Notes: a model not told the origin generated them from the letters alone. 64,000 nucleotides of DNA from IMGVR_UViG_3300028920_000022:248001-312000; one strand, 5' to 3'. Shown: positions 17,344 to 40,500, counted from the stretch's first letter. Translations and numbers: made by a program.

Positions 17344-18456
17344 ATGGATCCGATATATCTTGATGCGAATGCGCATGTTCCTTTAAGCAAAAAGGCACAA
17401 AAAGCATATATAGATTTCCAAAACTCTGTTGCCGGGCATGGACATCCTTCTTCACCTTCCCGGGCAGGACAGTTGGCAGCCGGGGAACTGGAAACCTCAA
17501 GAAGCAAAATAGCTACCCTTTTGGGAGCCAAAACATCCCAAATCGTCTTTACCTCCACCTGCTCCCAAGCCTGTGAATGGGGTATGCATATTTTAACGAA
17601 TCAATTAATTAAAAACCCATCACCCAGATTATTATTTTATTCTCCAATTGAACATTCTTCAATTAAATCAGCAATAGATTATTTTAAAATAAAACATTCT
17701 TCTTCGAACCCTATACATTTTAGTCAGCTTGGGGTTAATAAAAGTGGGATAGTTTCCGTTTCTTCTGCTCAAGGGGCGGTAGTTTGTATTCATGTTCAGA
17801 ACGAATTGGGAACGATTCAACCGATCGAACAGTTCGGAAAATGTATGTTACTTACCGATATGTGCCAAAGTATCGGAAAAGTTTCAATTAATCTAAATGA
17901 ATCTAATATAGATATTGCTGTATTTGGTGGGCATAAATTCGGGGGATCTGCGGGGTTGGGTTTTATTTATTTGAAAGATATAAAATGGTGGACAGAGTTT
18001 GGTACCGGTAGCAGATATTATAACGATCGTGCTGGCACTCCTGATGTTGGAGCTGCAGTTTCAACCGCAGTAGCATTAGAAGATGTTTTGATGAATATGC
18101 CAGAACGTTTATCAAAAGCCAAACAATTTCAAAATAGTTTGGAGCCCCGTTTAGAATCAATGGGGATAGAAATAATCGGTAAAAATGTACCTAGAGTTCC
18201 CACTACTACGTTTATTAGAGTACCAGATGTGGCAATGCAAATTTTGTTAGATCTATCTAGTCAAGGAATTTTGGTTGGGTTGGGTTCGGCTTGTGGATCA
18301 ATGCATACCGGACCTTCGCCTTTAATGCAAGCTTTGGGACGCCCAGGTGGGGCACACGACTTCATTCGTATCAGTCAACATGGGGAATATGGTCAAAAAG
18401 AAGCTCTCATGGTAGCTGATGCTTTTTACAAATCATGGCAAAAATACAGGAGATAA
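17344..18456 (+). CDS. iscS: Cysteine desulfurase (IscS/NifS-like, PLP class V)
   Basis: IYLDANA, HPSS, IVFTS, IEHSSI, QNELGTIQP, DMCQ, GGHK (PLP lysine), GTPDV, GSACGS (catalytic Cys) and FIRIS motifs all present in order. Confidence 0.88.
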   Translation: MDPIYLDANAHVPLSKKAQKAYIDFQNSVAGHGHPSSPSRAGQLAAGELETSRSKIATLLGAKTSQIVFTSTCSQACEWGMHILTNQLIKNPSPRLLFYSPIEHSSIKSAIDYFKIKHSSSNPIHFSQLGVNKSGIVSVSSAQGAVVCIHVQNELGTIQPIEQFGKCMLLTDMCQSIGKVSINLNESNIDIAVFGGHKFGGSAGLGFIYLKDIKWWTEFGTGSRYYNDRAGTPDVGAAVSTAVALEDVLMNMPERLSKAKQFQNSLEPRLESMGIEIIGKNVPRVPTTTFIRVPDVAMQILLDLSSQGILVGLGSACGSMHTGPSPLMQALGRPGGAHDFIRISQHGEYGQKEALMVADAFYKSWQKYRR

Positions 18457-19329: not shown

Positions 19330-19749
19330 ATGCGCAAAAAGACAGGAATATTTACACCTAAAAGACCTAAGATTCAATGTGAAGTATGCGGAGAATCAGA
19401 TTCTTCCATATTAGAACGTCATCATATTATTGAGCGTACAGATCTCAACTGTACCAATGATGATTTTAACATAGCTATTTTGTGCCCTTCGTGTCACACC
19501 AAGCTGCACACAGGAAGGCTCAAGATAATAGGCGTATATCCAGGAACCCGTCCACCTACTGGGCGGGTTTTGGTATATGAACTAGATGGGGTGAAAAACC
19601 TTGATTTAGATGAGGCTTATTTTATCCCAAAACCAACTTTTATGAAAGTACCGGAAAATGACAGACCTACACAAGATGATCAACGAAATGGCGGAGAGGG
19701 AGAAGGATCCCAGAGCAACGGCAGCTTCCGAAGCAAAGTCAAGAGCTAG
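19330..19749 (+). CDS. HNH endonuclease
   Basis: CEVCG...ERHHIIE...NIAILCPSCHTKLH: CxxC, HH, N, CxxCH. Confidence 0.85.
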   Translation: MRKKTGIFTPKRPKIQCEVCGESDSSILERHHIIERTDLNCTNDDFNIAILCPSCHTKLHTGRLKIIGVYPGTRPPTGRVLVYELDGVKNLDLDEAYFIPKPTFMKVPENDRPTQDDQRNGGEGEGSQSNGSFRSKVKS

Positions 19750-20974: not shown

Positions 20975-21708
20975 TTAATTGTTTGGATAAGTTAGTTCGT
21001 TTAGCCTCTGTTTTTCACAAATACGCCACCGAACGTACCCTATATCACGGTACTTCTATTAATCGTGCTCGTAAAATTGCCAAACAAGGACTGATCCCTC
21101 AAGTAGGATCGTGGGTCTCAGATTCGTATGGAATGGATTATGATCTCGATCCAGAAGGTGAAGATTATGAGGGCATGTACGAAAAACCTACCTTTGATAT
21201 AGTCTTTGCCGCCGATAAACAAGAACTTAGCAAAGCTTTGGGCGGCATGATCGCTACTATTGCTGCCGACTCTGGAAAATCGTTCCATGAGGTTACTGAC
21301 GAGGAAATTAGACAACAAGGTGCCCTTTTGATAATGCGTGAAGCTACCGGGTATGATGATTGGAAACATGTCCCAAAATCTGAAAAAGGACGTGAACAGT
21401 GGGAACGTGAACAGTGGGAAGAAGGTAAAACCTACCCTACCGCTGAACCAGGAGATTGGATTAGCGAAGAACAACAAGACGTGGATATCGTTTTAACCGG
21501 TGAATCCATGATTCGTAAATTGCGTCAAGCTGGCGCTTGGCCTAGAGATTGGGGACCAAATCAAACAAAAAATCGCCGTGAAATCTTAATAAAATTGTTA
21601 AAACAACATCACCCAAATGCCTCCATAAATCAAATAATTCAACGTGTCGATTCTTTGTCCCCTAAAGAACGTGAGTACTATTATTTGCAAGCTAGAAAAA
21701 ACAATTAG
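20971..21708 (+). CDS. ADP-ribosyltransferase-fold protein (putative)
   Basis: TLYHGTS...KIAKQGLIP matches the first strand/helix pattern of ART-superfamily (PARP-like / Tpt1-KptA-like) domains. Confidence 0.55.
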   Translation: MINCLDKLVRLASVFHKYATERTLYHGTSINRARKIAKQGLIPQVGSWVSDSYGMDYDLDPEGEDYEGMYEKPTFDIVFAADKQELSKALGGMIATIAADSGKSFHEVTDEEIRQQGALLIMREATGYDDWKHVPKSEKGREQWEREQWEEGKTYPTAEPGDWISEEQQDVDIVLTGESMIRKLRQAGAWPRDWGPNQTKNRREILIKLLKQHHPNASINQIIQRVDSLSPKEREYYYLQARKNN

Positions 21709-21824
21709 TTCCTTAACTCTCTTCCTATCTAAATAAATCGTAGCATCCTTATATAAAAATTGCTTTATAGATTATATAAATGCTAGAATTAAAAAGCGTT
21801 GAGTGAATATTATTTTCGAATGGT

Positions 21825-22820
21825 CTAGTATACGTCTTCCTGATTTTCTTGCTCATCGCTAATGTATACGGGGGTGTGATAAACGATTTGTGAATACAGA
21901 AATCTTTTCGGATCATGCTCTATTGTATATTGTATCACGTTATGAATTTGCTTTTCTGTGGGTTTTCTATTTTTAATTTTCTCTATATAATTTAAAGGAA
22001 CGGTAATAAGGTTTGGATATAATTCTTGTCCAGTGGATAAAGCCTTGGCGACAAATACATCATTAGCATCAGTTTCTCTACCATCGGGCCAATGAACTAG
22101 CCAGTTTCCCCAGTCCTCATTTCCAAGTTTTCGCACCCACTCGCCATGATATTTTTGCAGGTATTTTTCGGCAGAATATAGCGTGGTCCCATTTGGAAGC
22201 TGAGATGGGTTTGTTCCCTTTGGAATGGCGCTCCGTATCTTCGTTCTTCCAGCTTCGTATTCGTTTTTGTTTTTAATTTGTTTAATCGCATTCTCTCTTA
22301 AAGAACTGAGAAAACGATCCTCCCCAAAACCAAACTGACCAAAAAGCAATGAATAGTTATGTTTCCAGCTATTAAATTCAACGAACCTTATCCAACCTCT
22401 TTTCGCATCTTCAATAAAGCGTTGCGTTTGTTCTTTGGTTTTTTCTTTTTTTTCTTTGTCGGCTTCTTCTCTATTCGATAGCCGCTCTATACTTAGCATA
22501 AATCTTTCATATTCTGCTTTTCGTTTTTTAGGGTCTTTTTCATCTATTATTTCAATAGTGGCATGAACCCAAGATGGAGCTTCTTTATCAACCGGAGGAA
22601 ATCCAATGGTCTTCCTGGCTTGGTGCATATCATCAACGGTTAGACCGCCGCTCCCAAAAGCATCACCTATCGTCTTGCGGTCCATTTGTTCAAAAAGCCA
22701 CAAGACCGCCTTCTTATCAGATTGCTCTTTTTGTTTTTTTTTCTTAAATTCTGATAAATCGACCACTGCCAGTTTGTCAAAGCGTGAGGCTAGAGTTAAT
22801 ATTTTGCTATAAACACGCAT
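21825..22820 (-). CDS. Hypothetical protein with N-terminal LASxFxKxA peptide
   Basis: 331 aa, the only long ORF over this interval; has its own copy of the promoter motif 9 nt upstream. Confidence 0.7.
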   Translation of the reverse strand: MRVYSKILTLASRFDKLAVVDLSEFKKKKQKEQSDKKAVLWLFEQMDRKTIGDAFGSGGLTVDDMHQARKTIGFPPVDKEAPSWVHATIEIIDEKDPKKRKAEYERFMLSIERLSNREEADKEKKEKTKEQTQRFIEDAKRGWIRFVEFNSWKHNYSLLFGQFGFGEDRFLSSLRENAIKQIKNKNEYEAGRTKIRSAIPKGTNPSQLPNGTTLYSAEKYLQKYHGEWVRKLGNEDWGNWLVHWPDGRETDANDVFVAKALSTGQELYPNLITVPLNYIEKIKNRKPTEKQIHNVIQYTIEHDPKRFLYSQIVYHTPVYISDEQENQEDVY

Positions 22821-22841
22821 CTTTCAAAGATGCGTGTTTAT
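22809..22841. repeat. Perfect palindrome (16-bp arms) forming a face-to-face pair of promoter motifs
   Basis: ATAAACACGCATCTTT-C-AAAGATGCGTGTTTAT; contains TATA-AACAC-GCAT on + (22808-22820) and AATA-AACAC-GCAT on - (22842-22830). Confidence 0.8.
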
Positions 22842-22842
22842 T
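22830..22842 (-). promoter_or_regulatory. Candidate late promoter AATA-N5-GCAT (minus strand)
   Basis: Exact motif, 9 nt before the minus-strand ATG at 22820. Confidence 0.55.
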
Positions 22843-22933
22843 GGTTATTTACATTCGTATAATGTGTGCCTTATAAGCTTTATATCGTTATTGCTTCTCA
22901 TGCGCTTATATATCACTTAAAACGCATTTTAGC

Positions 22934-23830
22934 ATGGTGTTACGATCTAGAGGCGAATTCGCCAACCAAACCGATACAATTCAGCTGCGAGCAGAGTTTC
23001 GTGGACCTGATGGCACCCGAACAGATCTCGATAGTTATCCGCAATTTAGTGTAATGCAACCTTCAGGAAACGTAGCTCTGGAGCCTACTACCGCTGGAGT
23101 CTATCGAATCAGTGAGGGACTGTATGGGTTTGATTATGAGATTTGTTACAACTGTCCAATCGGCGTATATACAGATGTTTGGAGCGGTACTTTAACCGGT
23201 CTTACGGTCTATCAGACAGGTAACTTTGTGGTCCAGAATACTCAGTTGCCGGCGATTCCTACAGATGGCTATCGGCACCTTGGGGATGATGTACCATTTA
23301 ATTATTCGCAAAATGCCCTTTTAAATGTGAATAAAGTTATCAAAGTCATGAGGGCACGGTTAAATAGTCAGGGGAAAGCGAGGGTGAAAGATGAGTATGG
23401 CAATGTTAAATACATCGATTGTGATATTTATACTGTTCCTCAATTGGCTACTTTTGCGGGTACTGCGATAACTGCTTTTAATGAAATTCCACACTTTACT
23501 TGGTTTAATTGGGAAGATACAGAATTCGTGGATGAGTTCTTAGAGGTTTTGGCTCAGTACGCGGTGATCATGGCGCTGGCTTCGAAGGTGATGTTGGAGA
23601 GAGGGCGTGAGTTTGATATTACCGATAATGGTACCTCTTTTCGTCCTCCGGGTGTTTCGGATGTGCTGCAAACTCAGTATACGACGGAGTTGAATAATTG
23701 GTTTGAGAAGATAAAACTTATCAAAGCTAACACTAAACCGATGGGGCTAGGGTTAGGAACACTACGCCCCATGCAAACGCACCCTAGCTTCATGCGGCTT
23801 AGGCATCTCAGAGCGCGCAGGATATTCTAA
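22934..23830 (+). CDS. Head-tail adaptor / neck protein (putative)
   Basis: N-terminal Ig-like domain plus helical C-terminal domain (VIMALASKVMLERGREFDITDNGTSF...KP.GLG) typical of head completion proteins; position between head and tail modules. Confidence 0.6.
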   Translation: MVLRSRGEFANQTDTIQLRAEFRGPDGTRTDLDSYPQFSVMQPSGNVALEPTTAGVYRISEGLYGFDYEICYNCPIGVYTDVWSGTLTGLTVYQTGNFVVQNTQLPAIPTDGYRHLGDDVPFNYSQNALLNVNKVIKVMRARLNSQGKARVKDEYGNVKYIDCDIYTVPQLATFAGTAITAFNEIPHFTWFNWEDTEFVDEFLEVLAQYAVIMALASKVMLERGREFDITDNGTSFRPPGVSDVLQTQYTTELNNWFEKIKLIKANTKPMGLGLGTLRPMQTHPSFMRLRHLRARRIF

Positions 23831-23831
23831 T

Positions 23832-24095
23832 ATGGACAAAAAGCAATTAAAAGCCCAGCGCAAGAAAGAGCGCAACGACAGAATTCGGGAAATTGATCGT
23901 ATGAAATGGACCCATGAATGGGTATCCACACAAGTGTACAGTCTAAACGGAACCCGAATGCAAAATACCAATATACATTGCAAAAAGTGTGGGATGGGTT
24001 TATATAATTTCAGAGTAAGACCAATGTCATGTTCAGATGTAGCCGTGCATGACGTAATATCTTCAGAACCGGATTTGGGACACATAGGAATTTAA
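23832..24095 (+). CDS. Small putative zinc-binding protein
   Basis: HCKKCG and a later Cys/His; basic N-terminus. Confidence 0.5.
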   Translation: MDKKQLKAQRKKERNDRIREIDRMKWTHEWVSTQVYSLNGTRMQNTNIHCKKCGMGLYNFRVRPMSCSDVAVHDVISSEPDLGHIGI

Positions 24096-24601
24096 TGGTT
24101 GATCGTAAAACACAACTAAAAATCATCCAAGCATTGAAGGATAAGATCCGAGATCATGAGACTGTAAAGGACATGTTTAAAGAACATGGTGTGGACTTGT
24201 CAGAGATTGATTTAATTCCAATGGCGTTTGATGAAGATTTGGATGTTTCTGCGAGAACCGATCATGGCATAATCTATCTCAATGCAAAGCTATTAAAGGA
24301 CGATAAGATTTCTACGGACGATCATTATTTGGTGCATGAGATAACGCATTTTCTTCAACAGACCTGTGGTGACAAGCCTACTACTGGCGGCGGCAGTGGG
24401 GAAGATTATGTAACGAACAAGTATGAGGTAGAGGGGTTTCAGAATCAAACCGAGTATATTTCTGACGAATATGGGGATGAAGCTGCTGAAAAGTATGTAG
24501 ATCGGGTATTAGATCATCATAATTTAAGAGGGAAGAAGCGGGAAGACAGGAAAGATGTTTTGCTTCAATTAGCTTCGCGACTGGACAAGAATGCCTTGTA
24601 A
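24095..24601 (+). CDS. Zinc metallopeptidase-like protein (HExxH)
   Basis: IIYLN...YLVHEITHFLQQ...YVTNKYEVEGF, a zincin HExxH plus downstream Glu pattern. Confidence 0.7.
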   Translation: MVDRKTQLKIIQALKDKIRDHETVKDMFKEHGVDLSEIDLIPMAFDEDLDVSARTDHGIIYLNAKLLKDDKISTDDHYLVHEITHFLQQTCGDKPTTGGGSGEDYVTNKYEVEGFQNQTEYISDEYGDEAAEKYVDRVLDHHNLRGKKREDRKDVLLQLASRLDKNAL

Positions 24602-26195
24602 CATTACTCAGCCAACCTATGTACCTCCTTACAAAAGAGGATTACGTGTGGTCAACTCTGAGGGAGATGGCTATTCTATAAATGTATTTTGGTACAAGGC
24701 ATATGCGTCGGTAAATGGTTATTCAATTGCTTATAACATTTATTATTCTACCGAACCGGACGAGAATGTATTTGAAGAAGGTCCAAAATACGTTTCCACT
24801 AACACTTCTGGATTGACGGCATTATTGAAGGATTTTACACCTGGAGATGTGTATTACTTTGCTGTACGGGCGATGCAATATGACACATCCTGGTTTGATA
24901 TTTCCGAGTTAGCCAGTGGTGGAGACGGATATTTACACACATATCCTGAGGCATTATTATCGGCTGATATTACTGATAGCAGCGCAATTATACCCATAAC
25001 CGATATTCAATTATTTCCTGAATATGGGGCAATTCAAGTAGGGGCGGAATGGATTCGTTATACTGGGCGGAATGTCACTGACGGATATTTATCTGGGGTT
25101 ACACGGGGGTGGTTAGGAACGGATGCCAGGTTACACACCACTGATGGATATGACGGATATATTCAGAGGGATCCTATAATTAGGTTTTTCAAAGGATTAG
25201 AGGACAATAATCATTTTATAAACCAGGAAACCAGCACATTTCAAAATTACAACATATTCACGGCAACTGACGGATATATGACAAAAGATCGGGTGGGGAT
25301 ATTAACCACTGATTTATCTGCCAGTGATGAGGATCGGGTAGATTTTCGGAGTTATGATTATGCTGGTTGGCACAGGACAAACCCGACGCTTTTATTTCAG
25401 GGACAATGTTTAGACACCTACATTGGTGGTGAACATTTCTGTGCGGATGGATATGAAGGAGTTGGCAGAACGGTGCGCAATTTGTCTTTCTCGGAGCAAG
25501 CTGACAGGCGAGAGGAGATGTTAATTGAGCAAACGGGTGTTCCGGTGGTATTGGTACAACGGTTGTGGGATGGTATTGTTTGTAGTTGTTACGAGCCGGG
25601 GCGCGAGTCTCCCGAGCACCGGTGCCCAATTTGTTTAGGGAGCGGCTATATAGGGGGCTATCAGCAATACTTTAATCCACGGCGAAGCGATGGTAGGATT
25701 TTTGTTAGTTTAAATCCATACAACGAAGATTTAAAGGTAGAGGATGGCGGATTAGAGTCTTATGTAATTTACGATGCTTGGACTTTAACGGTTCCCACGG
25801 TACGGGATCGGGATTTTATTATTCGATTTAATTTGGATGGAACCGAAGAATTTCGATATGAGTTATTGGATGTAACTCGGAACACACTATTGTACGGAGA
25901 ATCTGGGAAGCAGAATTTCAAAGCACAACGTGTACGGAAGACTGATCCGATTTACATGTGGCGGGCGATTCGTAACACTGCCACCTTCCCTAGCGATTTA
26001 ACTACTACTGTGGGGTTATTGAGGGGACCGAATGGGGCAGTTATACCGCATACTCATCATGTGGTGATTAATGAGAATATTACATCTGTGGTACAAATAA
26101 ATCAAACTACCAGTCAAGATTCTGACCATTCGCATCCAGTAATTAACGGAGTTGTGCAGGTAGTGTTGGGACACACGCATGGTTTGACATTGTAA
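24591..26195 (+). CDS. Neck / head-closure protein with FN3-like N-terminus, Cys finger and HxH tail
   Basis: INVFW...YNIYYS...YYFAVRA (FN3-like); CSC...CPICLGSGYIGGY; C-terminal HTHH/HSH/HTH; 7 DGY. Confidence 0.6.
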   Translation: MPCNITQPTYVPPYKRGLRVVNSEGDGYSINVFWYKAYASVNGYSIAYNIYYSTEPDENVFEEGPKYVSTNTSGLTALLKDFTPGDVYYFAVRAMQYDTSWFDISELASGGDGYLHTYPEALLSADITDSSAIIPITDIQLFPEYGAIQVGAEWIRYTGRNVTDGYLSGVTRGWLGTDARLHTTDGYDGYIQRDPIIRFFKGLEDNNHFINQETSTFQNYNIFTATDGYMTKDRVGILTTDLSASDEDRVDFRSYDYAGWHRTNPTLLFQGQCLDTYIGGEHFCADGYEGVGRTVRNLSFSEQADRREEMLIEQTGVPVVLVQRLWDGIVCSCYEPGRESPEHRCPICLGSGYIGGYQQYFNPRRSDGRIFVSLNPYNEDLKVEDGGLESYVIYDAWTLTVPTVRDRDFIIRFNLDGTEEFRYELLDVTRNTLLYGESGKQNFKAQRVRKTDPIYMWRAIRNTATFPSDLTTTVGLLRGPNGAVIPHTHHVVINENITSVVQINQTTSQDSDHSHPVINGVVQVVLGHTHGLTL

Positions 26196-26198
26196 TGT

Positions 26199-26807
26199 AT
26201 GTGTAGTGTTTTATTAAAATGTGCTAGATTGTATGTAAAATCGATTTGGCAAGGTCGCAAAGATTACCGGTGGGCGCCTGGTCATTTTACTGATCAACCC
26301 TGGTGGGAGAAATATGTATCCCACATTCCGCAGAAGCGTTATTGGGGAAAAAAAGCTTCTGGTATGTTATTTTTATGTAGAGAAGATGGCACTTTGTTAT
26401 TACTTAAGCGTTCTAGAAATGTAGAGGATCCCGGAACATGGGGTGTTCCGGGTGGAGCAATAGGTGAAGGTTTTTCACATATTGAGCATGGAGAGAAGGA
26501 TCCTGAGAACAAGACATTTTTAGAATCTGCTCTTAAAGAGACTCAGGAAGAGTTGGGCACCATACCCAGAGTGGGCACTTTATTGGGTACAACCAATTTT
26601 AGGGATGGTGATTTTACATATCGCACATATATATACGACATTCCATTACAGGAAAAAGAAAGGTTTAGCAAGCAGATTGTATTGAATTGGGAGAATGATT
26701 ATTGGACATGGTTTAAGTTTGAGGATTTACCCACCAATTTGCACAAAGGTGTTATTTTTGCTCTCAATCAGATGATCAAAAAAACGGACATGGATGAAGA
26801 AAGCTAA
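26199..26807 (+). CDS. NUDIX hydrolase
   Basis: LLLLKRS...GTWGVPGG...ESALKETQEELG...WFKFEDLP, a Nudix box with an internal insertion. Confidence 0.85.
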   Translation: MCSVLLKCARLYVKSIWQGRKDYRWAPGHFTDQPWWEKYVSHIPQKRYWGKKASGMLFLCREDGTLLLLKRSRNVEDPGTWGVPGGAIGEGFSHIEHGEKDPENKTFLESALKETQEELGTIPRVGTLLGTTNFRDGDFTYRTYIYDIPLQEKERFSKQIVLNWENDYWTWFKFEDLPTNLHKGVIFALNQMIKKTDMDEES

Positions 26808-38034: not shown

Positions 38035-40500
38035 ATGCCAAACTTTCCAGGCTCAAACCAAGCACTTCCTGGCGTATATACCCAGGTAACTACATTATCA
38101 AAAGGCGTTTCCATTCCCGGTGGACAGCGATCTGCTGTGTTGATGGGAGAAGGCTCCAGAATAGAAACAATAGTTGCTTCAGCGAATGGTGGTGGCAATG
38201 ATGGTCTGGATTCAACTTTTACTACCACTACAGGGCAGGACGGAAGGCATTTTCAGTTAAGTAATGCTCCTATTATCAGTAATCGCACAACTTTGTATAA
38301 AAACGGGGTAACGCTGGCAGGTACGGAAGGAACTAATAACGAGTCATCGTTTAGTTCCGCTTATGATTATAGAATAGATATCACTGATGGAACGATTGAA
38401 CTGCAAGCGGCAGCACTCGTAGATCAGGGTGGCGCATATTACTCAGCTAGTGCCCTAAATGTGGGAACTGGAGAAATCTCCAATTTAACACTAGTAGATG
38501 AAAATGCCCCTTCTGAAACTTGGACTGTTCGTTGCACTTCAGTGCGGCGAGACGGTTATGGCGATCCTATTGATGGATATGCCAAATTTGTGGTTCAGGG
38601 GTCAGTAAGCGGCACCATACTGGACGGTTATGGGAATCAAATATTCTGGCAGTCTAACGGTGTATTGGTAAGTAATGGTATCCTTAGTTTCTCTATCTCG
38701 GAAGGAGCTACGGCATTCCAGGAAGGCGATCGTTTTACCATTGAAGTGGAAGGCGGAGTACTCCTAGCTGGAGACAGCTTAACTGCAACTTATATAGCCA
38801 CCACAGACATCAATACTCCAGAGTATTTTACAGACATTAACGCACTCACCACAAAACATGGTTCACCAAGTTTGACGAACCGTCTTTCTCTGGGTGCCCA
38901 GTTAACTTTTGCTAATACTCCTCCTGGTGTTTGGGCACTGCAAGCTGCTCCATCAATTCCAAGACGTGTTTCTTATGTGTTGGAAGAGTCGGCTTCTGGC
39001 GGAACAGCGGTAGATGATTTGACATTTGCTTTGCCCCTTGGGGTTGTTCCGGACGCTGATACAAATATTAATTTCTTTATTACCGATCCAGTAACAGAAG
39101 TAGAATCACAGATAATCCCTAATAAAGTGGATTTTTATGATGCCGCTATAACAGCGAGTCCTACTTCATTCATCAATGGTGCTGGGTATGTATTCTCATA
39201 TACGGTAATTTTAGATGAGACTACTGGTGTAGTTAAAGAAGACAATGATGGCGTTTTGGTTTCCTTGGGCGGAAGTCAAGCAACGATCAGTAGCGCAACA
39301 GTAAACTTTAACATTGATGATTTAAGTGCAACTCGTTCATTGAAGATCTTCAACGCCGCTTCGGCGAACAATGGAACTCATACGATCGTGTCGATTTCTG
39401 ATGGAGTAATGACTATTCAGCATGAGACCGGTGGTACATTTGTGGGAGAAACTTCGGTAGAATTCCAGGTTCTTGATTCTTCAATTGAGGATGCAAAGAT
39501 TCTTTGGACTGATGATCTGGCAATGACTTTGGGACAGTCACTTCGTGCAACCATTGTTGATACCAGGGACGCTGATTTCTTTGATGTTGGATGGATTTCT
39601 GCTTATGAAGCGCTGGAAACTATTGAAACGGATATAATTGTTCCATTACCTTCACAAACGATTTCTGCCATTTTCCAGAACGGCAAGTCACATGTTGAAT
39701 ATATGAGCAATATCAAGAATCGTAAAGAACGGGTGTTGTTCATTGGTGCAATTCAAGGATTAGAGCCAGCCAACGTAATTGGAACCACTAATGCTGCGGT
39801 GGAGGACATAGGTATTCTTGAAGGAATTCAAGGTGACGATGTTTCCGAGGTTCTAGCTGGAAACATTGAGGATCTGGCGAACTACGGTGTACAGAACGCT
39901 TATTCTGATACTTATCGGGTTTGTTACTTCTACCCTGATGAGATTGTGGTTCAGATTGGCGCTGATAGAACATTGGTGGATGGGTTCTTTATTTCCGCAG
40001 CAGCGGCAGGGTTCTTATCTGCAATGACGAATATTGCGGTACCATTGACCAATAAGACGCTCAGCGGGTTCACCATTTTGAGTGATAAGCAGTATCGTCC
40101 AATTACTCTGGAGCAACTAACTGCCAGCGGTATTACGGTATTGCAGCCTATAACTGGTGGTGGACGAGTTATTCGTGGTCAGACTACTACTAATAGCGGA
40201 TATCTTGAAGAGCTTGAACTTAGCATTGTCTTCATACGAGACCGTATTGCTAAGAATATGCGGCAAGCATTCCAGGGATTCATTGGTACGGCTGAGTCCA
40301 GCATACTCAAAGGGTCTTTGATTTCGCGTGCCACAGGTATGTTAAACGGCTTTATAACGCAAGGATACATTACTTCGTGGACGGATTTGAAAGTTGATAG
40401 AGATGAAGTTGATCCAACACAGTGGAATGTGAAAGTACATGTACAACCCACTTATCCGGTTAACTTTGTTTATATTGAGTTTACAGTTGGTATTCTGTAA
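38035..40500 (+). CDS. Contractile tail sheath protein
   Basis: N-terminal PGVY motif; C-terminal ELSIVFIRDRI...VKVHVQPTYPVNFVYIEF; long internal insertion domains; 3 DGY. Confidence 0.9.
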   Translation: MPNFPGSNQALPGVYTQVTTLSKGVSIPGGQRSAVLMGEGSRIETIVASANGGGNDGLDSTFTTTTGQDGRHFQLSNAPIISNRTTLYKNGVTLAGTEGTNNESSFSSAYDYRIDITDGTIELQAAALVDQGGAYYSASALNVGTGEISNLTLVDENAPSETWTVRCTSVRRDGYGDPIDGYAKFVVQGSVSGTILDGYGNQIFWQSNGVLVSNGILSFSISEGATAFQEGDRFTIEVEGGVLLAGDSLTATYIATTDINTPEYFTDINALTTKHGSPSLTNRLSLGAQLTFANTPPGVWALQAAPSIPRRVSYVLEESASGGTAVDDLTFALPLGVVPDADTNINFFITDPVTEVESQIIPNKVDFYDAAITASPTSFINGAGYVFSYTVILDETTGVVKEDNDGVLVSLGGSQATISSATVNFNIDDLSATRSLKIFNAASANNGTHTIVSISDGVMTIQHETGGTFVGETSVEFQVLDSSIEDAKILWTDDLAMTLGQSLRATIVDTRDADFFDVGWISAYEALETIETDIIVPLPSQTISAIFQNGKSHVEYMSNIKNRKERVLFIGAIQGLEPANVIGTTNAAVEDIGILEGIQGDDVSEVLAGNIEDLANYGVQNAYSDTYRVCYFYPDEIVVQIGADRTLVDGFFISAAAAGFLSAMTNIAVPLTNKTLSGFTILSDKQYRPITLEQLTASGITVLQPITGGGRVIRGQTTTNSGYLEELELSIVFIRDRIAKNMRQAFQGFIGTAESSILKGSLISRATGMLNGFITQGYITSWTDLKVDRDEVDPTQWNVKVHVQPTYPVNFVYIEFTVGIL

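Follow-up and report, generated by a model that had tools for sequence, protein, structure and literature searches.

The stretch analysed here, called the window throughout, covers 64,000 nucleotides and corresponds to bases 248001-312000 of a single 458,729-bp virus record in IMG/VR (IMGVR_UViG_3300028920_000022); positions refer to the window unless marked as genome coordinates. Four neighbouring genes of this stretch encode proteins that share a short terminal peptide, referred to below as the tag: an ADP-ribosyltransferase (ART)-like gene (ART1), the gene of a protein named P331, a gene for a small HExxH protein and a NUDIX hydrolase gene (Table 1). The source genome has a GC content of 39.5%, was rated 100% complete by CheckV and originates from a marine sediment metagenome assembly, the virus being uncultivated. 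It contains a tail sheath gene at 38035-40500 and was therefore assigned to a huge myovirus-like phage. The sheath displayed only distant kinship to sheaths of Eggerthella, Gordonia and Bacillus G phages. BLASTN and TBLASTN searches of GenBank phages gave no match for the region or for the ART1, P331 and HExxH proteins. Judged by these comparisons, the phage is without a close cultured relative.

Table 1. Genes, terminal peptides and other features of the tagged locus, in window positions (aa, amino acids)
Feature	Position	Strand	Remarks
ART-like gene (ART1), 245 aa	20971..21708	+	ATGA overlap between its start codon and the stop codon of the conserved 116-aa gene before it
ART1 N-terminal tag LVRLASVFHKYA, residues 8-19	20992..21027	+	
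P331 gene, 331 aa	21825..22820	-	
P331 N-terminal tag ILTLASRFDKLA, residues 7-18	22767..22802	-	
Perfect palindrome, 15-bp stem, 3-nt loop	22809..22841	.	Lies over the P331 start codon, in a 113-bp divergent intergenic region
Conserved 298-aa core gene	22934..23830	+	Edge of the variable slot; homolog in 71/80 related loci
HExxH gene, 168 aa	24095..24601	+	Runs 11 nt into the following gene
HExxH C-terminal tag-like peptide LLQLASRLDKNA, residues 156-167	24560..24595	+	
Conserved 534-aa protein, FN3-like N-terminal domain	24591..26195	+	Homolog in 74/80 related loci
NUDIX hydrolase gene	26199..26807	+	Pfam NUDIX 2.8e-12
NUDIX weak N-terminal variant LLKCARLYVKSI	26211-26246	+	

The open reading frames (ORFs) and their translations were re-read, and the four terminal peptides were found exactly where a preliminary description of this DNA had placed them. 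ART1 begins MINCLDK-LVRLASVFHKYA-TERTL-YHGT, with five residues between the tag and YHGT, and P331 begins MRVYSK-ILTLASRFDKLA. The HExxH protein bears the peptide at its other end, which reads DV-LLQLASRLDKNA-L before the stop codon, and the NUDIX protein begins MCSV-LLKCARLYVKSI. The four proteins had been described as otherwise unrelated, and indeed BLASTP against all ORFs of the genome revealed no mutual similarity beyond the peptide. In the tag-coding DNA, 18-21 of 36 nucleotides were identical, with identity at 2-7 of the 12 third positions. Since the third positions differ, the likeness lies at the protein level; a DNA repeat or recombination site was ruled out by the differing synonymous positions.

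The evidence from this genome alone was moderate, and at best suggestive of a shared tag. A profile of three peptides scored 35-38 on its own members and 26 on the next best match, in a test that is circular. The P331 and HExxH peptides, compared directly, gave a score of 34, the best scores of 200 shuffled proteomes averaging 26.5 and peaking at 33-36; the P331 and ART1 peptides scored 24, which is noise level. In leave-one-out searches the P331 tag ranked first and was reached by 0/200 shuffles, the HExxH tag tied for the first rank (4/200 shuffles) and the ART1 tag failed (rank 3, p 0.72). When all terminal 26-mers of this genome were compared with each other, no general excess of shared termini was detected, and none for N-termini; many pairs reached scores of at least 34, which arose from low-complexity or Cys motifs. 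The ART1 failure, these high-scoring pairs and the absence of an N-terminal excess would all be in line with a chance likeness of ordinary amphipathic helices. A Dam-like methyltransferase (genome 185850-186668) also scored in the tag profile; it is probably a false positive, as RYPGGK and EPFFGGGS motifs read in its N-terminus suggest that the matching segment is part of the methyltransferase domain.

The search was extended to 80 related IMG/VR loci, which were fetched with a profile of the HExxH family and comprise 1.44 Mb in total, on contigs of up to 480 kb. Related loci or contigs are given L-numbers (L003, L028 and so on) and proteins of relatives P-numbers (P0131-P0137). The 1029 ORFs of at least 120 residues from these loci were scored with a profile built from 13 ART-type and P331 tags. 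At scores of at least 14, 16, 18 and 20, this profile matched 11, 8, 5 and 2 times within the N-terminal 30 residues and 13, 8, 8 and 5 times within the C-terminal 30 residues, versus 2, 1, 0 and 0 times within internal residues 31-60. The means obtained with 30 column-permuted profiles ranged over the three segments from 1.1 to 2.1, 0.4 to 0.9, 0.07 to 0.3 and 0 to 0.13 at the same thresholds. The matches belonged to about ten unrelated families. The motif therefore extends beyond the four peptides first described and is enriched at termini, over internal segments as well as over scrambled profiles.

In the reverse direction, a profile trained on 17 foreign tags alone was run on the proteome of this genome (about 140,000 positions). 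Its top five matches were ART2 (a family paralogous to ART1), an ORF at genome 10590, ART1, an ORF at genome 129220 and P331. At a score of at least 14, 9 of 494 N-terminal segments were matched, versus 1 internal and 0 C-terminal segments and a permuted mean of 0.1. The ART1 tag scored 19.7 in this test, rank 3 of the proteome, and the P331 tag was, with 25.4, the best match of the proteome to a separate profile trained on sequences of other genomes only. The NUDIX variant reached 13.8-14.0 with foreign-trained profiles. As independent training sets and scrambled controls were used across genomes, the motif is clearly non-random, and these cross-genome data are considered decisive for its reality.

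Thirty tags gave the 12-residue consensus [LI][LVI]-K-L-A-x-[LIV]-F-E-K-[LK]-[AL]. The best retained positions were F8 (28/30), K10 (23/30) and A5 (22/30), followed by position 9, which is acidic (E or D) in 17/30. The N-terminal tags (23 of them) were offset by 2-10 residues from the start, and the C-terminal ones lay within about 20 residues of the protein end. Pro- and Glu-rich stretches follow several N-terminal tags. As a helix, the tag has a mean hydrophobic moment of 0.55, a mean hydrophobicity of 0.12 and a mean net charge of +1.2. These values, together with a wide hydrophobic face and the use of either terminus, would also suit an in-plane membrane anchor bringing the enzymes to the host inner membrane, like the terminal amphipathic helices of MinD, FtsA and MreB. 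Membrane-targeting helices are conserved more loosely by position, and the conservation of F8, K10, A5 and acidic 9 exceeds that known for them. Besides, scrambled profiles of the same composition retrieve almost nothing, and an anchor leaves the association and fusion with the HExxH gene, described below, unexplained, so that this function is regarded as very unlikely.

Conservation of the tag in orthologs was established for ART1, P331 and the NUDIX protein. ART1 has eight orthologs at 45-68% identity, and every complete one keeps the helix just before TLYHGT, with tags such as ILKLSYIFEKLA, IIKLAQLFEKLA, LYKLASLFEKLA and, in L003, IVRLASAFYRCA (pattern [IL]xKLAxLFEKLA). Remote relatives, at 31-35% identity, start MIKLKSLLVEK-TLYHGT, which represents a decayed tag. 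YHGT, Y53 and E159 are invariant in the family alignment, and the family profile matches Tpt1/KptA at the YHGT region (E 0.01). The AlphaFold2 model of ART1 (predicted local distance difference test, pLDDT, of 59) was too weak to show whether the helix is packed against the domain. The ART2 protein (genome 184902-185864) starts MWKN-LLKDADLFEKFA-KAQPIYMYHGT, and its ortholog in a 435-kb relative, P0132, carries the helix VEKLACLFEKLA internally, between HAD_SAK_2 and YHGT domains. PARP matches were obtained for ART2 and P0132. Because these lie at E 0.005-0.017, and the Tpt1 match at the value given above, the assignment of both families to the ARTs is a lead and not yet a proven membership.

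For P331, a word-based search found the protein itself alone, and phmmer against 1.84 billion representatives retrieved seven remote homologs. Six of these have an intact N-terminus, and five of the six show their best motif segment at residues 3-7. An ESM Atlas search gave nothing usable on the function of P331. The weak NUDIX variant is retained in two orthologs, as IIKCAELFLSAA (L005) and LLKCAKIYTEAA (L014), with the pattern hhKCAxhF/Y. The peptide is kept at 30-50% overall identity and the coding DNA is not, which argues for selection on the peptide.

On a 77-kb Joint Genome Institute contig (L003:5755-19441), the closest ART1 ortholog is found within an NAD/ADP-ribose metabolism cluster of a related phage, together with genes for PARP (WGR/PARP_reg/PARP), Cpn10, a poly(A) polymerase-like protein, NAPRTase, ADP-ribosylglycohydrolase and NAD synthase. 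At L095:5998-7467, a remote ART1 relative with the decayed start given above occupies a 489-codon open frame, counted from stop to stop. Downstream in this frame are a HELNH motif region and Cys-rich segments, forming another ART-plus-HExxH-type combination; Pfam gave nothing beyond a weak BSP peptidase family match.

Homologs of the HExxH protein number more than 180 and come from contigs as long as 435 kb. Of the related loci, 79/80 contain one; by this distribution, its gene is a core gene of the clade. Residues H81, E82, H85, E111 and E113 are invariant in the family, and so is L156 near the C-terminus, followed by a nearly invariant L157. The AlphaFold2 model (pLDDT 86) shows a domain that begins at residue 4 with a confident helix, and a further helix at residues 146-157 that ends at the conserved LL. 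The tail beyond it is poorly ordered in the model, the last ten-residue block averaging a pLDDT of 46 and residues 163-168 falling below 50. The top Foldseek matches were all zincins (the VgrG2b effector domain, abylysin, jannalysin, selecase and IrrE), at E values of at least 0.1 and TM-scores of 0.23-0.52. The eCIS_core/DUF4157 family (PF13699) was matched below threshold by 20 of 32 HExxH members, with a best E of 1e-3; the HExxH protein of the window obtained 15.3 bits, under the curated cut-off of 22 bits. A PDB profile search with it found nothing. Taken together, the comparisons suggest that the HExxH protein has a small zincin-like fold and is a distant relative of DUF4157/eCIS_core, and it is described here as a putative peptidase.

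Tagged genes were found to be concentrated beside this gene. In 68 non-identical loci, the tag was carried by 17 of 129 genes in the two slots upstream of HExxH, versus 10 of 977 elsewhere (Fisher p 6e-7). One P331 homolog, P0133, directly precedes an HExxH homolog, and elsewhere the two are fused. This fusion, P0134 (584 aa), is encoded in the HExxH slot, ahead of a 533-aa gene. Its residues 11-163 form the HExxH domain (54% identity, E 6e-52) and residues 155-445 are P331-like (E 4.5e-37). Both alignments share a single copy of the tag at the joint, ELLQLNKKVQAAKVIDFNKFK, which corresponds to DVLLQLASRLDKNAL in HExxH and to KILTLASRFDKLAVVDLSEFK in P331. An 884-aa protein of L028 combines HExxH with PcfJ and LRV/HEAT repeats and bears a strong tag, VLKMASIYEKFA, 20 residues before its end. 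HExxH is fused to a HAD hydrolase in L091, and P0137 joins a P331-like part to a VanY/M15 cell-wall peptidase. Right after the gene of a P331-like/VanY fusion, a 175-aa protein (L105:4055-4582) ends with EVILKLANDYLQNHKQNK, which fits tag positions 1-8 but has a low score of 6.7.

With this hot spot added to the cross-genome tests and to the conservation in orthologs, a chance likeness has become extremely improbable, and it is refuted as far as sequence statistics reach. The preliminary description had proposed the peptide as a candidate capsid-targeting signal, with T4 as the model. Adjacency and fusion to HExxH argue at least as strongly for a carrier or tail-cargo logic like that of contractile injection systems (eCIS), and the coupling of the tag to the DUF4157-like HExxH gene is a new point that appears better supported than capsid targeting.

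The fusions also bear on a different origin of the helix, namely as an evolutionary leftover. It would have been a linker joining variable C-terminal domains to an HExxH carrier, comparable to the junction motifs of polymorphic toxins, kept after the proteins split and having no targeting role; in the ART families it would be the first helix of the domain. Its place at the fusion junctions and inside P0132 agrees with this, as do the decayed versions in remote ART1 relatives and the fact that, within this genome, the P331 peptide is most similar to that of HExxH. The selection on the peptide seen above, in spite of the diverged third positions, is not expected of a mere remnant. The C-terminal tags of L028 and of the 2H phosphoesterases described next, and the carriers located far from HExxH, are also unlike a linker for C-terminal modules. 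A leftover of this kind is considered distinctly unlikely.

A set of different enzymes was found to carry the tag. In 2H phosphoesterases of 187-205 aa it follows the catalytic domain, examples being LLQSANLFYKFA-TK and LLQKATVFEKLA; their Pfam matches are 2_5_RNA_ligase2 (1e-12 to 1e-15) and Acb1 (1e-7), a family directed against the cyclic-oligonucleotide-based antiphage signalling system (anti-CBASS). Kinase-like carriers include P0131 and a protein of L092 matching Pkinase and a PHROG annotated as protein kinase inhibiting host transcription. DUF5661 proteins, NUDIX proteins, the two ART-like families and several small unassigned proteins complete the list. This genome encodes no homolog of any foreign tagged protein, and therefore the tagged set seems to be exchanged quickly between relatives.

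Two further observations were made on N-termini of this genome. A 493-aa protein with GDSL lipase and SLT lytic transglycosylase domains, likely a cell-wall enzyme (genome 449396-450877, minus strand), begins MLRYSS-LEKACSNFHKIA, a weak tag candidate (14.4-15.8) located directly before the GDSL block. A second N-terminal peptide, MKIRTGFVSNSSSSSF, is common to seven otherwise different genes outside the window, for example genome 425150-427113 (-), 442104-442400 (-), 102407-102799 (+) and 166904-168391 (+). One of these genes (495 aa) has a radical SAM domain (Pfam 2.7e-17) and three others are without a Pfam match.

The tagged locus lies within a conserved gene block that precedes the tail sheath gene and has genes for proteins of 125 aa, 116 aa and 298 aa, HExxH and a 534-aa protein in this order, with genes for proteins of 135 aa and 1747 aa further on. 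Here the 116-aa and 298-aa genes are separated by the inserted ART1 and P331. None of the 80 related HExxH loci was found to hold a homolog of ART1 or P331, and the ART1 gene is therefore taken as an insertion in this genome. Searches for related loci with ART1, ART2 or a 149-aa protein alone found nothing. Homing-endonuclease-type domains (HNH, LAGLIDADG, GIY-YIG) are dispersed in the conserved structural block of the clade (19330-19749; L004, L005, L104 and L105) and may help explain the insertion of accessory genes there. A class-V aminotransferase gene at 17344-18456 (Pfam 7e-34) also lies within the head and tail gene block; its homologs occur in 17/80 related loci and also in L004, the 435-kb relative.

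The 534-aa protein gave weak PHROG matches to 'virion structural protein' and an FN3 match of E 8e-5; a PDB profile search with it found the FN3 domain and nothing else. It is probably a virion protein coupled to the HExxH gene. The palindrome over the P331 start codon was flagged by the terminator scan and could either hide this codon or serve as an operator. In the promoter and terminator scan as a whole, counts were not above those of shuffled controls.

The comparisons made across relatives show a tag that is real, conserved and specific to termini, that is linked to the HExxH gene and that recurs at the junction of HExxH fusions. Since tagged genes crowd beside, or are fused to, a zinc-peptidase-like gene in the virion block, the explanation preferred here, though tentatively, is that the helix serves as a docking or loading tag, which ties cargo enzymes to a common virion-assembly partner for delivery with the particle. 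A portable amphipathic helix specific to the clade would mark unrelated accessory enzymes at either terminus and would bind one common partner in the virion-assembly pathway. The small DUF4157-like HExxH protein is the favoured candidate for this partner or carrier, although a virion part that HExxH would bind as well could also play this role. The cargo would then be packaged in the head or the tail lumen and co-injected. Targeting to the head, as known from T4, would be a plausible version of such a mechanism. Neither Peptidase_S77 nor Gp23 was matched in this genome, and no gp21-type protease came up, but control genomes were equally silent, so this result is uninformative. A complex prediction with HExxH, the 534-aa protein and P331 residues 1-40 returned no verdict and speaks neither for nor against binding. 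In its fullest version, the proposal is an unrecognised, sequence-defined cargo-loading system of huge phages, with the DUF4157-like zincin as carrier or processing factor and the helix marking quickly exchanged takeover and anti-defence enzymes for packaging and co-injection; this is possible but more doubtful. Such a system would link phage virions mechanistically to the cargo logic of contractile injection systems.

Several findings weigh against a loading tag. The HExxH family conserves the LLxLA half alone, with the full motif in 4/120 homologs, and the tag alignments contain no conserved cleavage motif downstream of the tags. The internal helix at the domain junctions of P0132 and P0134 is unlike a cleaved N-terminal signal of the T4 type. 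In the ART families the helix could even be a fixed part of the fold, given that it abuts the YHGT strand of ART1 at five residues' distance and is internal in P0132. By its hydrophobic moment and charge it could also bind membranes. Finally, ART1 orthologs in relatives lie outside the structural block, the one of the 435-kb relative being away from the HExxH locus, and this genome has several tagged genes dispersed away from the block. The earlier proposal of an ejected effector set is supported in part: the carrier types (ART-like, kinase-like, Acb1-like 2H phosphoesterase and NUDIX) resemble such a set, and their genes are concentrated in the variable slot of the virion block.

This dispersal, and the non-structural contexts of ART1 orthologs such as the NAD-metabolism cluster of L003, would be expected if the helix docked enzymes on a hub outside the virion in the infected cell, for example a host complex modified by all of them or a phage scaffold on which a multi-enzyme takeover complex is built, with HExxH as a client or processing enzyme. 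The motif, its terminal enrichment and the carriers fit such a hub equally well. It leaves unexplained why tagged genes cluster beside HExxH in a conserved virion block and why fusions of HExxH with tagged domains occupy this slot, and a hub outside the virion is judged unlikely.

Should the helix prove to be a loading tag, it would provide a rule, readable from genomes only, for the enzymes that this clade of huge phages delivers with its DNA, and the delivered candidates would include anti-CBASS, ADP-ribosylating and kinase effectors. A role would be suggested, too, for the DUF4157/eCIS_core domain known from contractile injection systems, and a 12-residue portable handle would become available to load foreign proteins into phage particles. 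Whatever the partner, the motif defines a network of a hub and its clients.

Among known systems, the internal proteins IPI-III and the ADP-ribosyltransferase Alt of phage T4 share an N-terminal capsid targeting sequence that is cut off by the prohead protease. As in T4, a short terminal peptide is here the sole common part of unrelated, fast-changing accessory proteins, among them an ADP-ribosyltransferase-like one, and it is often close to the extreme N-terminus. The gene content at one locus differs between relatives, so that the tagged slot resembles the T4 internal-protein locus. Unlike the T4 sequence, the tag also occurs C-terminally and at internal junctions, has no sequence likeness to it and is followed by no visible cleavage motif. 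It is tied to a zincin-like gene, whereas that of T4 is tied to a serine prohead protease.

Short terminal peptides that load unrelated enzymes into a protein shell are also found in the HK97-type protease tail, the cargo-loading peptides of encapsulins and the encapsulation peptides of microcompartments. These resemble the tag in the use of either end, in flexible spacers and, in microcompartments, in forming amphipathic helices; the likeness is one of description, and no sequence relation was seen. As with the HK97-type protease, a protease-like protein bears the signal on its own C-terminus. The minigluzincins proabylysin, projannalysin and selecase are zymogens blocked by their own C-terminal tails. 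Together with VgrG2b, these small HExxH zincins gave the best fold matches to the HExxH model, at the E values and TM-scores given above. The tail of the model differs from theirs in being undocked, with the low pLDDT at residues 163-168.

The remaining comparison is with the cargo of contractile injection systems. DUF4157 marks such cargo, in which it lies between a loading sequence and a variable effector domain and is dispensable for loading (bioRxiv 10.64898/2026.05.27.728243). The loading sequences are N-terminal, disordered and system-specific, and are common to the cargoes of one system (bioRxiv 10.64898/2026.05.27.728243). The phage element differs from them as a 12-residue helix at either end, and the HExxH protein is without a disordered N-terminal leader and matches the Pfam family below threshold; moreover, it belongs to a complete phage and not to a tail-only particle. 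In common with the eCIS cargo are the contractile-tail context, the DUF4157-like zincin fused or adjacent to variable domains (P331-like, PcfJ with LRV, HAD) and a putative loading sequence, system-specific and shared among the cargoes.

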